Positions 1 to 15,463 of a stretch of 64,000 bases of DNA are shown one piece after another. The notes beneath the pieces are model-generated. The model was given only the letters and a program-made list of their open reading frames with translations, did no database searches and was not told the origin of the DNA. The stretch covers positions 8,060,001 to 8,124,000 of the forward strand of contig NC_043023.1 in NCBI RefSeq assembly GCF_006345805.1, written 5' to 3'. Numbering within the stretch: the first letter of the stretch is position 1; each line of letters begins with the position of its first letter. This DNA comes from Octopus sinensis. Taxonomy: Eukaryota. The translations under genes were made by a program, and so were the position numbers.

Positions 1-3000
1 ATACTGGTGAGAAACCTTATCATTGTGATATCTGTGGTAAATCATTCTCTCAAAGCACTAACTTGACTGACCACATACGTACACATACTGGTGAGAAACC
101 TTATCATTGTGATATCTGTGTTAAATCATTCTCTCAAAGCACTAACTTGACTGATCACATACGTACACATACTGGTGAGAAACCTTATCATTGTGATATC
201 TGTGGTAAATCATTCTCTCAAAGCACTAACTTGACTGATCACATACGTACACATACTGGTGAGAAACCTTATCATTGTGATATCTGTGTTAAATCATTCT
301 CTCAAAGCACTAACTTGACTGATCACATACGTACACATACTGGTGAGAAACCTTATCATTGTGATATCTGTGGTAAATCATTCTCTCAAAGCACTAACTT
401 GACTGACCACATACGTACACATACTGGTGAGAAACCTTATCATTGTGATATCTGTGTTAAATCATTCTCTCAAAGCACTAACTTGACTGATCACATACGT
501 ACACATACTGGTGAGAAACCTTATCATTGTGATATCTGTGGTAAATCATTCTCTCAAAGCACTAACTTGACTGACCACATACGTACACATACTGGTGAGA
601 AACCTTATCATTGTGATATCTGTGTTAAATCATTCTCTCAAAGCACTAACTTGACTGATCACATACGTACACATACTGGTGAGAAACCTTATCATTGTGA
701 TATCTGTGGTAAATCATTCTCTCAAAGCACTAACTTGACTGATCACATACGTACACATACTGGTGAGAAACCTTATCATTGTGATATCTGTGTTAAATCA
801 TTCTCTCAAAGCACTAACTTGACTGATCACATACGTACACATACTGGTGAGAAACCTTATCATTGTGATATCTGTGGTTAAATCATTCTCTCAAAGCACT
901 AACTTGACTGATCACATACGTACACATACTGGTGAGAAACCTTATCATTGTGATATCTGTGTTAAATCATTCTCTCAAAGCACTAACTTGACTGATCACA
1001 TACGTACACATACTGGTGAGAAACCTTATCATTGTGATATCTGTGGTAAATCATTCTCTCAAAGCACTAACTTGACTGATCACATACGTACACATACTGG
1101 TGAGAAACCTTATCATTGTGATATCTGTGGTAAATCATTCTCTCAAAGCACTAACTTGACTGATCACATACGTACACATACTGGTGAGAAACCTTATCAT
1201 TGTGATATCTGTGTTAAATCATTCTCTCAAAGCACTAACTTGACTGATCACATACGTACACATACTGGTGAGAAACCTTATCATTGTGATATCTGTGGTA
1301 AATCATTCTCTCAAAGCACTAACTTGACTGACCACATACGTACACATACTGGTGAGAAACCTTATCATTGTGATATCTGTGTTAAATCATTCTCTCAAAG
1401 CACTAACTTGACTGATCACATACGTACACATACTGGTGAGAAACCTTATCATTGTGATATCTGTGGTAAATCATTCTCTCAAAGCACTAACTTGACTGAT
1501 CACATACGTACACATACTGGTGAGAAACCTTATCACTGTGATATCTGTGTTAAATCATTCTCTCAAAGCACTAACTTGACTGATCACATACGTACACATA
1601 CTGGTGAGAAACCTTATCATTGTGATATCTGTGTTAAATCATTCTCTCAAAGCACTAACTTGACTGATCACATACGTACACATACTGGTGAGAAACCTTA
1701 TCATTGTGATATCTGTGTTAAATCATTCTCTCAAAGCACTAACTTGACTGATCACATACGTACACATACTGGTGAGAAACCTTATCATTGTGATATCTGT
1801 GTTAAATCATTCTCTCAAAGCACTAACTTGACTGATCACATACGTACACATACTGGTGAGAAACCTTATCATTGTGATATCTGTGTTAAATCATTCTCTC
1901 AAAGCACTAACTTGACTGATCACATACGTACACATACTGGTGAGAAACCTTATCATTGTGATATCTGTGTTAAATCATTCTCTCAAAGCACTAACTTGAC
2001 TGATCACATACGTACACATACTGGTGAGAAACCTTATCATTGTGATATCTGTGTTAAATCATTCTCTCAAAGCACTAACTTGACTGATCACATACGTACA
2101 CATACTGGTGAGAAACCTTATCATTGTGATATCTGTGTTAAATCATTCTCTCAAAGCACTAACTTGACTGATCACATACGTACACATACTGGTGAGAAAC
2201 CTTATCATTGTGATATCTGTGTTAAATCATTCTCTCAAAGCACTAACTTGACTGATCACATACGTACACATACTGGTGAGAAACCTTATCATTGTGATAT
2301 CTGTGTTAAATCATTCTCTCAAAGCACTAACTTGACTGATCACATACGTACACATACTGGTGAGAAACCTTATCATTGTGATATCTGTGTTAAATCATTC
2401 TCTCAAAGCACTAACTTGACTGATCACATACGTACACATACTGGTGAGAAACCTTATCATTGTGATATCTGTGTTAAATCATTCTCTCAAAGCACTAACT
2501 TGACTGATCACATACGTACACATACTGGTGAGAAACCTTATCATTGTGATATCTGTGTTAAATCATTCTCTCAAAGCACTAACTTGACTGATCACATACG
2601 TACACATACTGGTGAGAAACCTTATCATTGTGATATCTGTGTTAAATCATTCTCTCAAAGCACTAACTTGACTGATCACATACGTACACATACTGGTGAG
2701 AAACCTTATCATTGTGATATCTGTGTTAAATCATTCTCTCAAAGCACTAACTTGACTGATCACATACGTACACATACTGGTGAGAAACCTTATCATTGTG
2801 ATATCTGTGTTAAATCATTCTCTCAAAGCACTAACTTGACTGATCACATACGTACACATACTGGTGAGAAACCTTATCATTGTGATATCTGTGTTAAATC
2901 ATTCTCTCAAAGCACTAACTTGACTGATCACATACGTACACATACTGGTGAGAAACCTTATCATTGTGATATCTGTGTTAAATCATTCTCTCAAAGCACT

Positions 3001-6000
3001 AACTTGACTGATCACATACGTACACATACTGGTGAGAAACCTTATCATTGTGATATCTGTGTTAAATCATTCTCTCAAAGCACTAACTTGACTGATCACA
3101 TACGTACACATACTGGTGAGAAACCTTATCATTGTGATATCTGTGGTAAATCATTCTCTCAAAGCACTAACTTGACTGATCACATACGTACACATACTGG
3201 TGAGAAACCTTATCATTGTGATATCTGTGTAAATCATTCTCTCAAAGCACTAACTTGACTGATCACATACGTACACATACTGGTGAGAAACCTTATCATT
3301 GTGATATCTGTGTTAAATCATTCTCTCAAAGCACTAACTTGACTGATCACATACGTACACATACTGGTGAGAAACCTTATCATTGTGATATCTGTGTTAA
3401 ATCATTCTCTCAAAGCACTAACTTGACTGATCACATACGTACACATACTGGTGAGAAACCTTATCATTGTGATATCTGTGTTAAATCATTCTCTCAAAGC
3501 ACTAACTTGACTGATCACATACGTACACATACTGGTGAGAAACCTTATCATTGTGATATCTGTGTTAAATCATTCTCTCAAAGCACTAACTTGACTGATC
3601 ACATACGTACACATACTGGTGAGAAACCTTATCATTGTGATATCTGTGTTAAATCATTCTCTCAAAGCACTAACTTGACTGATCACATACGTACACATAC
3701 TGGTGAGAAACCTTATCATTGTGATATCTGTGGTAAATCATTCTCTCAAAGCACTAACTTGACTGATCACATACGTACACATACTGGTGAGAAACCTTAT
3801 CATTGTGATATCTGTGTTAAATCATTCTCTCAAAGCACTAACTTGACTGATCACATACGTACACATACTGGTGAGAAACCTTATCATTGTGATATCTGTG
3901 TTAAATCATTCTCTCAAAGCACTAACTTGACTGATCACATACGTACACATACTGGTGAGAAACCTTATCATTGTGATATCTGTGTAAATCATTCTCTCAA
4001 AGCACTAACTTGACTGATCACATACGTACACATACTGGTGAGAAACCTTATCATTGTGATATCTGTGTTAAATCATTCTCTCAAAGCACTAACTTGACTG
4101 ATCACATACGTACACATACTGGTGAGAAACCTTATCATTGTGATATCTGTGGTAAATCATTCTCTCAAAGCACTAACTTGACTGATCACATACGTACACA
4201 TACTGGTGAGAAACCTTATCATTGTGATATCTGTGTTAAATCATTCTCTCAAAGCACTAACTTGACTGACCACATACGTACACATACTGGTGAGAAACCT
4301 TATCATTGTGATATCTGTGTTAAATCATTCTCTCAAAGCACTAACTTGACTGACCACATACGTACACATACTGGTGAGAAACCTTATCATTGTGATATCT
4401 GTGTTAAATCATTCTCTCAAAGCACTAACTTGACTGATCACATACGTACACATACTGGTGAGAAACCTTATCATTGTGATATCTGTGGTTAAATCATTCT
4501 CTCAAAGCACTAACTTGACTGATCACATACGTACACATACTGGTGAGAAACCTTATCATTGTGATATCTGTGTTAAATCATTCTCTCAAAGCACTAACTT
4601 GACTGATCACATACGTACACATACTGGTGAGAAACCTTATCATTGTGATATCTGTGTTAAATCATTCTCTCAAAGCACTAACTTGACTGATCACATACGT
4701 ACACATACTGGTGAGAAACCTTATCATTGTGATATCTGTGTTAAATCATTCTCTCAAAGCACTAACTTGACTGATCACATACGTACACATACTGGTGAGA
4801 AACCTTATCATTGTGATATCTGTGTTAAATCATTCTCTCAAAGCACTAACTTGACTGATCACATACGTACACATACTGGTGAGAAACCTTATCATTGTGA
4901 TATCTGTGTTAAATCATTCTCTCAAAGCACTAACTTGACTGATCACATACGTACACATACTGGTGAGAAACCTTATCATTGTGATATCTGTGTTAAATCA
5001 TTCTCTCAAAGCACTAACTTGACTGATCACATACGTACACATACTGGTGAGAAACCTTATCATTGTGATATCTGTGGTAAATCATTCTCTCAAAGCACTA
5101 ACTTGACTGATCACATACGTACACATACTGGTGAGAAACCTTATCATTGTGATATCTGTGTTAAATCATTCTCTCAAAGCACTAACTTGACTGATCACAT
5201 ACGTACACATACTGGTGAGAAACCTTATCATTGTGATATCTGTGTTAAATCATTCTCTCAAAGCACTAACTTGACTGATCACATACGTACACATACTGGT
5301 GAGAAACCTTATCATTGTGATATCTGTGTTAAATCATTCTCTCAAAGCACTAACTTGACTGATCACATACGTACACATACTGGTGAGAAACCTTATCATT
5401 GTGATATCTGTGTTAAATCATTCTCTCAAAGCACTAACTTGACTGATCACATACGTACACATACTGGTGAGAAACCTTATCATTGTGATATCTGTGTTAA
5501 ATCATTCTCTCAAAGCACTAACTTGACTGATCACATACGTACACATACTGGTGAGAAACCTTATCATTGTGATATCTGTGGTAAATCATTCTCTCAAAGC
5601 ACTAACTTGACTGATCACATACGTACACATACTGGTGAGAAACCTTATCATTGTGATATCTGTGTTAAATCATTCTCTCAAAGCACTAACTTGACTGATC
5701 ACATACGTACACATACTGGTGAGAAACCTTATCATTGTGATATCTGTGTTAAATCATTCTCTCAAAGCACTAACTTGACTGATCACATACGTACACATAC
5801 TGGTGAGAAACCTTATCATTGTGATATCTGTGTTAAATCATTCTCTCAAAGCACTAACTTGACTGATCACATACGTACACATACTGGTGAGAAACCTTAT
5901 CATTGTGATATCTGTGTTAAATCATTCTCTCAAAGCACTAACTTGACTGATCACATACGTACACATACTGGTGAGAAACCTTATCATTGTGATATCTGTG

Positions 6001-15000: not shown

Positions 15001-15200
15001 TAACTTGACTGACCACATACGTACACATACTGGTGAGAAACCTTATCATTGTGATATCTGTGGTAAATCATTCTCTCAAAGCACTAACTTGACTGACCAC
15101 ATACGTACACATACTGGTGAGAAACCTTATCATTGTGATATCTGTGTTAAATCATTCTCTCAAAGCACTAACTTGACTGATCACATACGTACACATACTG
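1..15200 (+). repeat. 84-bp tandem array (coding minisatellite), about 181 copies, 5'-truncated by the window edge
   Basis: Unit catactggtgagaaaccttatcattgtgatatctgtg(t/g)taaatcattctctcaaagcactaacttgactga(t/c)cacatacgtaca repeats continuously. First TGTGATATC is at 24 and the last QSTNLTD finger at about 15134, i.e. 180 periods after correcting for net -10 nt of indels. Confidence 0.98.
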
Positions 15201-15463
15201 GTGAGAAACCTTATCACTGTGATATCTGTGTTAAATCATTCTCTCGTAATAGTGACTTGGTTAAACACAAACGTACACATACTGGAGAGAAACCATATCG
15301 TTGTGATATCTGTGGTAAATCATTCTCTCATAATAGTGCCTTACAAAGACACAAACGTATTCAGCGCAGGAGTGGCTGTGTGGTAAGTAACTTGCTTACC
15401 AATGACACGGTTCCGGATTCAGTCCCAGTGCGTGGCACCTTGGGCAAGTGTCTTCTACTATAG
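1..15463 (+). CDS. Giant poly-C2H2 zinc-finger ORF (about 183 fingers in window), 5'-partial, with 12 apparent frameshifts; could be a CDS or a pseudogene
   Basis: Consecutive ORFs all encode [11 protein letters not shown](G/V)[16 protein letters not shown], then two divergent fingers ([14 protein letters not shown]) and a SINE-derived tail to TAG at 15463. No substitution stops; all breaks are indels. Confidence 0.6.

Follow-up and report, generated by a model that had tools for sequence, protein, structure and literature searches.

The window analyzed here (the whole 64,000-nucleotide stretch of Octopus sinensis DNA) opens inside a tandem array of near-identical C2H2 zinc fingers, and the question that this locus raises is whether such an array belongs to a working gene for a homopolymeric repeat-binding protein or is a satellite born from a zinc finger (ZF) exon. 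Both readings had been put forward in an earlier examination of the letters alone (the sequence-only reading). The second of them fits the evidence that could be tested, whereas the first is unsupported by the array as assembled, in which the reading frame is broken 12 times.

Tandem Repeats Finder (TRF) reported an 84-bp tandem array at positions 1 to 15330, with 182.6 copies and 99% matches, and segmentation resolved this into 181 near-identical units (1 to 15194, + strand), each encoding one finger with the helix QSTNLTD, plus two diverged fingers (15195 to 15278 and 15279 to 15362), in agreement with the earlier count of about 181 repeats. As the array is already under way at base 1, it continues past the 5' end of the window, which had also been anticipated. 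A total of 169 units are exactly 84 bp long, and the expected one site per unit for EcoRV or SnaBI was borne out (183 and 180 sites, respectively). The array is a genuine feature of the window sequence. Its units have the C-X2-C-X12-H-X3-H spacing, the conserved F and L, and the TGEKP linker of C2H2 fingers, and Pfam profiles matched its last open reading frame (ORF) with E = 1.7e-47 for zf-C2H2 (PF00096) and E = 3e-65 for zf-H2C2_2 (PF13465).

Variation within the array is sparse and patterned. The helix is identical in 168 of the 169 intact units, confirming its near invariance, and the differences sit at the Gly/Val residue after the second Cys and at synonymous sites. By form, 128 units are V and 37 are G; array-wide, the corresponding codon is GTT 132 times versus GGT 39 times, making G/V the main amino acid variant, as the sequence-only reading had it. 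A second frequent variant, the synonymous GAT/GAC, had gone unmentioned there. The single substitution in the contact helix is a C>G change at 14411 (+ strand), the S>R replacement at helix position +1 that had been noticed near that position. Altogether, 17 different unit sequences occur, in a nonperiodic order and with no duplicated multiunit block. The unit-type strings show an edge zone (1 to 1597, + strand) in which G and V units largely alternate (a 168-bp dimer pattern) and GAC variants are commoner, a center that is almost pure V/GAT, and a 3' edge (about 11669 to 15194) that is mixed again. With more than 15 kb of head-to-tail units at 99% identity, mixed edges, and a uniform center, the array has the layout of a satellite or minisatellite; the identities within the window's other 84-bp ZF arrays, in contrast, are 71 to 85% (TRF).

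The reading frame of the array is broken by 12 units, namely, seven of 83 bp (carrying TGTGTAAA), three of 85 bp (carrying TGTGGTTAAA), one with a 1-bp deletion, and one of 79 bp. The first two groups are one-base indels at the G/V codon (n = 10; + strand; the first at 877 to 879), every one of which shifts the finger frame, with GGTT (+1) at 877, 4488, and 6841 and GT (−1) at 3230, 3985, 7682, 7933, 8268, 13049, and 14728. The 1-bp deletion (ATACTGG to ATATGG; 11582 to 11595, + strand) lies at the start of unit 139. The sequence-only reading had recorded one copy damaged by a 5-bp deletion; that deletion is indeed present, with its junction (CTCAAAGTCTTGACTG) at 9371 to 9386 (+ strand) in the helix-coding part of unit 112 (the 79-bp unit, 9323 to 9401), but it is one of the 12 breaks. 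The assembled array therefore falls into 13 frame blocks, its longest ORF spans 28 fingers (803 aa), and the coding potential of more than 5,000 aa proposed earlier does not follow from this sequence. Not being one open reading frame as assembled, the array looks more like an exon-born satellite than like a giant working protein. Further, the standard unit contains no ATG in the finger frame.

Singleton substitutions in the array number four: besides the S>R change, unit 134 carries E>D, unit 135 R>C, and unit 142 I>L, and all four are nonsynonymous; the substitution types in the array are five nonsynonymous to two synonymous (P = 0.40 at omega 1 and P = 0.006 at omega 0.1). These rare changes look neutral and nothing in the array points to purifying selection, although four singletons, which may include sequence errors, in a very young array make this no firm showing. 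The uniformity of the contact residues would be explained by how recently the array arose and is no sign of selection.

The 3' boundary retains what appears to be a record of how the array arose. The first 51 bases of the hybrid finger at 15195 to 15278 (+ strand) are array-like, V codon included, and differ by one synonymous change (CAT>CAC), while the finger carries the helix RNSDLVK; this hybrid marks the 3' limit of homogenization. The last, diverged finger (15279 to 15362, + strand; helix HNSALQR) is truncated at its final His, its second His codon being replaced at the junction with a SINE-like element, which meets the finger with its canonical 5' end. This element is dispersed in nine copies in the window; its 5' part here (15364 to 15550, + strand) starts with the usual 5' end GCGCAGGAGTGGCTG, and the finger frame runs on into it as far as a TAG stop at 15461 to 15463.

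The array also belongs to an octopod cluster of poly-finger genes arranged in tandem on one strand, as six further ordinary ZNF arrays lie downstream in the window, all on the + strand like the array itself (TRF). Clustered C2H2 ZNF expansions have already been described for octopods (PMC9795677, PMC10547256). ORFs of the cluster within the window reach about 16 diverse fingers, and frame decay is present in the neighboring arrays as well. The fingers nearest to the array unit, at most 72/84 identical, sit in the adjacent ZNF array (20899 to 23774, + strand), the frame of which decays after 306 aa and the final stretch of which (23061 to 23774, + strand) is a truncated finger repeated in tandem with a 76-bp period. 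Two downstream ZNF arrays have such a 76-bp amplification of the truncated terminal finger, with copy numbers by paralogue of 1, 1, 4, and 7 to 10. As this amplification is nontriplet, finger units in this cluster amplify regardless of coding. Dispersed repeats of the window are 82 to 90% identical to loci of Octopus vulgaris (GCA_951406725.2); Rfam and ARAGORN scans of the window gave no match.

On balance, we favor, with fair though by no means complete confidence, the reading that one 84-bp finger unit in the ZF exon of a C2H2 ZNF gene, itself part of a same-strand cluster of ZNF genes and pseudogenes, has very recently undergone runaway tandem amplification. The conserved backbone and linker and the 84-bp periodicity of adjacent fingers would have provided homology for replication slippage and unequal sister chromatid exchange, by which a single finger with the helix QSTNLTD may have expanded; a derived G>V variant could then have come to dominate the center of the array while the mixed G/V pattern stayed at the edges. 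The outcome would behave as a minisatellite or satellite and not as a gene, with its frame broken, its 3' end truncated by the SINE, and no sign of purifying selection. The array is thus probably a ZF-exon-derived minisatellite or satellite and its host gene probably a pseudogene. The 12 frame breaks, the SINE-cut 3' end, the neutral-looking substitutions, the absence of the finger from the public proteins and gene models searched, and the 76-bp parallel all fit a satellite derived from a ZF exon. The array with its variants and assembled frame breaks, its junction with the SINE, its setting in the cluster, and the parallel noncoding 76-bp amplification are directly observed; recombination as the mechanism, a recent origin, and lost protein function are inferred.

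The alternative that survives best is that the locus works as a gene and encodes a giant homopolymeric protein, with anywhere from dozens of identical zinc fingers to more than 100; most of the frame breaks would then be assembly errors. The ten G/V-codon indels may be consensus artefacts, since GGTT reads as "both" and GT as "neither" of the GGT and GTT variants; ten of the 12 breaks are thus of a both-or-neither type at the sole common nonsynonymous variant, on the local background. The sole such indel inside the GAC-rich zone has the local GAC background, which favors generation in place over the spread of a mutated unit. In addition, the ratio of indels to substitutions in paralogous segments elsewhere in the window is normal (1:7 to 1:20), so the indels at the G/V codon may be consensus errors specific to the array. 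If all ten are errors, two lesions are left, and the 5-bp deletion would be preceded by at least 111 fingers that share a frame. A working gene would also account for the runs of 27 to 28 perfect fingers without a break, for the finger frame being the only open frame on either strand of the array, and for fingers that fit the canonical C2H2 profiles and are joined by TGEKP linkers. However, the 5-bp and 1-bp deletions lie away from the G/V site and still break the frame, the SINE truncates the 3' end, the majority unit has V where Gly after the second Cys is usually conserved, and every singleton is nonsynonymous.

With Q at −1, N at +3, and D at +6, every finger of such a protein is predicted by the canonical recognition code to bind approximately 5'-CAA-3', and the product might coat (CAA)n/(TTG)n-like simple repeats, bind RNA, or act as a scaffold; yet the window contains no (CAA)5+ tract, and long runs of canonical-linker fingers lose DNA register after a few fingers. 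The finger was likewise not found in the public gene models and predicted proteins searched. Matches among 5.8 billion protein clusters (queried with the last ORF, a two-finger query, and the 803-aa ORF) and 1.84 billion representatives (queried with the 803-aa ORF) were generic ZNFs lacking the QSTNLTD finger, the best at 57 to 75% identity, in searches that seem to return only proteins about as long as the query and hence cover some length ranges only. The QSTNLTD helix was missing from all public octopod proteins retrieved. The highest-scoring giant ZNF models (2 to 5.8 kaa) and P0392 were rejected as homopolymeric relatives, their fingers being diverse. The inspected public models of 2,000 to 5,800 aa consist of several modules in series, each an N-terminal domain plus an array of diverse fingers, and therefore look like fused multigene predictions, in keeping with the earlier premise that the fingers of a ZF gene number in the tens at most. 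Overall, we regard a working giant-protein gene as unlikely, and the conjunction in which the G/V-codon indels are assembly errors and more than 100 identical C2H2 fingers are encoded and expressed as one protein by the locus, or by one of its alleles, as slightly more doubtful still.

Further down in probability is a genome-wide (e.g., pericentromeric) satellite family that merely abuts a ZNF gene and is not an expansion of that gene's own exon. The size and homogeneity of the array are satellite-like, but the array lies in register and on the same strand with the two diverged fingers that follow, is joined to them via the hybrid unit, and has its closest relatives among the fingers of the adjacent gene. 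The unit was not found again in the other 48 kb of the window, and an exact-pattern scan gave 0 matches in metagenome contigs and 0 in two O. vulgaris loci. The literature searched contained no earlier account of an 84-bp ZF-derived satellite or VNTR or of such a cephalopod satellite, and we consider this explanation improbable.

Least probable of all, and in our view very improbable, is an over-expanded or misjoined assembly of a far shorter finger repeat (a handful of copies, like ordinary ZF minisatellites): 99%-identity arrays exceeding typical read length are hard to assemble, the odd indels clustered at one variant site suggest a consensus of mixed reads from different units, and the array reaches the window edge, but assemblers more often collapse such arrays than expand them, the 3' boundary is clean and unique with its hybrid unit, the edges grade from heterogeneous to a homogeneous center, and the variant order is nonperiodic, with singletons and without the repeated multiunit blocks that over-expansion tends to yield. 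No multiunit variant pattern recurs, which led us to reject a simple duplication of blocks during assembly.

Returning to amplification within a ZF exon, the closest known parallel is PRDM9, in which 84-bp (28-aa) finger units lie head to tail in one exon and undergo unequal exchange and concerted evolution with unstable copy number (PMC4874674). Like that coding minisatellite, the array repeats an 84-bp finger unit in tandem with near-perfect identity. However, PRDM9 has about 5 to 22 fingers versus at least 181 units here; its fingers differ mainly at −1, 2, 3, and 6, whereas the contact residues of the array are invariant and the main variant affects a backbone Gly; and its frame stays open, whereas that of the array is broken 12 times as assembled, with ten of the breaks possibly consensus artefacts. 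PRDM9 also has PR/SET, KRAB, and SSXRD domains upstream of its fingers, while the 5' end of the array falls outside the window; the cluster context suggests an ordinary ZNF-only paralogue rather than a PRDM9-like gene. A PRDM9-like identity was not adopted, given the invariant contact residues and the short N termini of the cluster paralogues, which lack an effector domain.

Other systems share single aspects of the locus. Ruminant PRDM7 and clustered ZNF pseudogenes keep the 84-bp periodicity despite frameshifts and stops, as the array does, but PRDM7-type arrays decay without expansion, whereas the expansion here goes about tenfold beyond anything normal for such arrays, with far greater homogeneity. 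Like the lineage-specific C2H2 ZNF clusters of octopods, the window holds same-strand tandem poly-finger genes with TGEKP linkers and repeats common to Octopus vulgaris loci, although the fingers of other cluster members are diverse and the retrieved octopod proteins lack the QSTNLTD finger. In gene- or exon-derived satellites and coding macrosatellites (e.g., D4Z4/DUX4), amplification at the DNA level has multiplied coding sequence into tandem arrays that are long and homogeneous; the array resembles them in this respect, but their units are kilobases long and contain a whole gene, whereas here a single 28-codon protein module was amplified in frame within an exon. If translated, the array would resemble engineered chains of identical fingers designed for a repeated triplet, although such chains run to no more than about 18 fingers and keep register only with modified linkers.

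As coding minisatellites, ZF arrays are known only on the scale of some ten to forty diverse fingers; here, the same DNA-level instability extends an order of magnitude further and turns a protein module into a homogeneous array of 15+ kb. If our preferred reading is correct, the locus shows a satellite being born from an exon, with its origin still legible in the in-register boundary, the hybrid unit, and the two surviving original fingers, and it calls for caution in annotation and in counts of ZNF repertoires in cephalopod genomes. Were a protein of more than 100 fingers made instead, its finger array would far exceed all other natural ones in length and would alone among them be homopolymeric, and the product would be a predicted reader of CAA/TTG-type simple repeats or a nucleic acid-coating or scaffold protein; as a homopolymeric DNA-binding protein (by predicted binding), it would be without natural precedent.

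The SINE-like element that cuts the last finger, a feature absent from the sequence-only reading, is itself split. Its 3' part lies at 16201 to 16413 (+ strand), separated from the 5' part by approximately 650 bp of inserted sequence (15551 to 16200), and the two parts are near-contiguous in an Octopus vulgaris copy (locus L001).

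The window begins with an 84-bp tandem array of C2H2 finger-coding units at positions 1 to 15330 (182.6 copies in Tandem Repeats Finder), in which units match at 99%, versus 71 to 85% in the window's other 84-bp zinc-finger arrays. As its first base is base 1, the array extends upstream of the window. Unit boundaries were set by anchoring on the linker-coding motif, yielding 183 units in the region: 181 near-identical units (1-15194), a hybrid unit whose first 51 bases are array-like and whose helix is RNSDLVK (15195-15278), and a diverged last finger with helix HNSALQR (15279-15362). 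Canonical C2H2 fingers and linkers were recognized in the array by Pfam; the finger-coding frame of the consensus unit is open, and stops occur in every unit in the other two forward frames. Among the 169 units of exactly 84 bp, 168 share an identical helix, and, named for the residue after the second Cys, 128 encode the V form (Val, GTT) and 37 the G form (Gly, GGT), the other four being singletons. The sequence-only reading of a large near-identical array that reaches beyond the window is thus borne out, on a striking scale, as are its G/V variant, its S>R variant at 14411, and its single EcoRV and SnaBI sites per unit.

We consider it probable that, in an octopod ZNF gene belonging to a cluster, one finger-coding unit recently underwent runaway amplification within the finger exon and that the array now behaves as a satellite or minisatellite within what is probably a pseudogene. 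Through the rest of the window, ordinary poly-finger arrays form a cluster on the same strand (20899-23774, 30817-31353, 34715-36217, 43255-44289, 49804-51338, and 59176-60797), with ORFs of at most 469 aa and frame decay in several arrays. The fingers closest to the array unit, with at most 72 of 84 bases identical, belong to the first of these arrays, the adjacent gene downstream. Octopod and Argonauta ZNFs are among the protein matches to array finger queries, and lineage-specific clustered C2H2 expansions have been documented in octopods (PMC9795677; PMC10547256). The truncated terminal finger of the cluster genes, which ends in a stop, varies in copy number, with one copy each at 51184-51216 and 26378-26410, four tandem copies at 35840-36097 (within a repeat region at 35784-36127), and 7 to 10 at 23067-23746 (within 23061-23774). 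The period of this repeat is 76 bp, and its copies are 93 to 96% identical to each other; as 76 is not divisible by three and each copy contains a stop, the amplification cannot be coding. This parallel, noncoding case within the window shows that, in the cluster, a DNA-level process indifferent to coding amplifies single finger units.

The center of the array is almost pure V/GAT, and both edges hold a G/V mix (near-alternating at 1-1597) and most of the units with GAC, a synonymous variant of GAT; this is the pattern expected if unequal exchange homogenized the middle and left older variants at the edges. Nearly all other fingers of the window have Gly after the second Cys, so Val is derived, and it has expanded across the array as far as the hybrid boundary unit. 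The substitution types comprise two synonymous (GAT/GAC and CAT/CAC) and five nonsynonymous ones, and the singletons are nonsynonymous in all four cases. Given the 17 synonymous and 67 nonsynonymous sites of each unit, the latter outcome has a P of 0.40 under neutrality versus 0.006 at an omega of 0.1, four events being few; judged from sequence, the substitution pattern would be expected under neutrality, and strong constraint would make it unlikely. About five rare substitutions across 15.2 kb point to a very recent origin, perhaps of the order of 10^5 years as a rough estimate at a typical metazoan neutral rate, and the invariance of the contact residues therefore signals youth rather than selection. 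The array resembles the coding minisatellite of PRDM9 in its 84-bp units and concerted evolution (PMC4874674), but the contact-residue variation that is the hallmark of the PRDM9 family is missing from it.

The main rival reading, a giant homopolymeric finger protein with frame breaks that are mostly assembly errors, appears unlikely. More than 5,000 aa of coding potential and only one damaged copy had been proposed; as assembled, however, the array is not a single reading frame, as 12 of the 181 units are frame breaking and the finger frame shifts 12 times. The longest uninterrupted blocks hold 28, 28, and 27 fingers, the longest ORF is 803 aa, and, as the finger frame of the standard unit lacks an ATG, a translation start would need to lie upstream of the window. 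The breaks comprise seven 83-bp units carrying TGTGTAAA, three 85-bp units carrying TGTGGTTAAA, a 1-bp deletion in a single unit (ATATGG; 11582-11595), and the previously noted 5-bp deletion (~9371-9386), which leaves a unit of 79 bp. Ten of the 12 fall at the common GGT/GTT codon and take exactly two forms, GGTT, with both variant bases, and GT, with neither. The sole such unit in the GAC-rich 3' zone has its neighbors' GAC, which argues that these indels arose in place rather than by spread from one mutated unit. Because at least eight independent identical indels would be odd beside the only ~7 substitution types otherwise seen in the array, because just two exact forms occur, and because gap-to-mismatch ratios in paralogous segments elsewhere in the window are ordinary (1:7 to 1:20), the ten indels are, on balance, probably consensus or polishing artifacts of a near-identical array. 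Caution is advised by GAT/GAC, the other common variant site, where no such indels were seen; G units are likewise scattered singly among V units, so scatter by itself is no proof of error. The 5-bp and 1-bp deletions, both ordinary in kind, lie away from the G/V codon; should they be the only real breaks, units 1 to 111 of the window would be in a single frame, terminating just after unit 112.

Under the canonical recognition code (Q at -1, N at +3, and D at +6), each array finger would presumably read approximately CAA, and no (CAA)5 or longer tract occurs in the 64-kb window. A protein with the array finger was found neither among 5.8 billion protein clusters (best identity, 58 to 75%) nor among 1.84 billion representatives scanned in full with HMMER (at most 57% identity); the window ORFs had no exact match on look-up in public data, and the array unit had zero matches in a metagenome scan. 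Such absence is weak evidence on expression, because those collections would hold few sequences from the array even at the level of genomic reads. The largest public ZNF models returned (2,000 to 5,800 aa) have diverse fingers and several modules in series, each an N-terminal domain plus a finger array, and for that reason look like fused predictions of several adjacent genes; very long database ZNF entries should not be accepted as real giant finger proteins. The array would be of high significance only if shown to be translated. The two other alternatives are less likely than a giant protein. A dispersed satellite family is quite improbable, and our literature search turned up neither an 84-bp satellite derived from a finger nor a cephalopod repeat of this kind. 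Least probable is assembly overexpansion of a shorter array, since the order of unit variants is nonperiodic and no multiunit block was found twice, which argues against simple assembler duplication.

At the 3' end of the array region, the last finger is interrupted within its final His codon, with cgtattca followed directly by GCGCAGGAGTGGCTGTGTGGTAAGT, the typical 5' terminus of a dispersed SINE-like element (nine copies in the window versus none by chance). The finger frame continues into this SINE, reaching a stop at 15461-15463, and the finger exon is not resumed downstream of the junction. Here the SINE lies in two halves (15364-15550 and 16201-16413) with ~650 bp inserted between them; in a copy from Octopus vulgaris, the same halves nearly adjoin. 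The dispersed repeats of the window match two O. vulgaris loci (GCA_951406725.2), and the SINE copies, like the other repeats, are 82 to 90% identical to those there. Together with the octopod and Argonauta ZNFs among the protein matches, these repeats lead us to assign the window to an octopod genome. An ORF of 222 aa in the insert (15551-16200) matches no Pfam family, and a portion of the insert (15549-15750) has an 82% match in an O. vulgaris locus. All nine SINE copies are on the + strand (15369, 25954, 26179, 28837, 29070, 29241, 39281, 55493, and 61970), with the 5' end GGCGCAGGAGTGGCTGTGTGGTAAGT; ARAGORN and Rfam recognized no tRNA or other RNA in them and returned nothing from the window.

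The cluster is partly a tandem segmental duplication (~32.6-44.3 kb versus 47.6-60.5 kb; 89 to 96% identity). The duplicated block, of ~12 to 13 kb, contains two ZNF arrays and LINE-like ORFs, and its two copies share 89% identity overall and 96% over 37148-40833 versus 53385-57053. Within it, two minus-strand ORFs of 234 aa (38247-38951) and 166 aa (54812-55312) have no significant Pfam match and resemble the C-terminal region of a retroelement protein. Between the array and the adjacent gene, a ~1.2-kb element (17699-18880) with long inverted repeats at its termini (arms of 27, 56, and 70 nt, 93 to 97% complementary) looks like a foldback or MITE-type transposon; after it come a (TA)n tract and a related but smaller element with inverted repeats (18923-19296).
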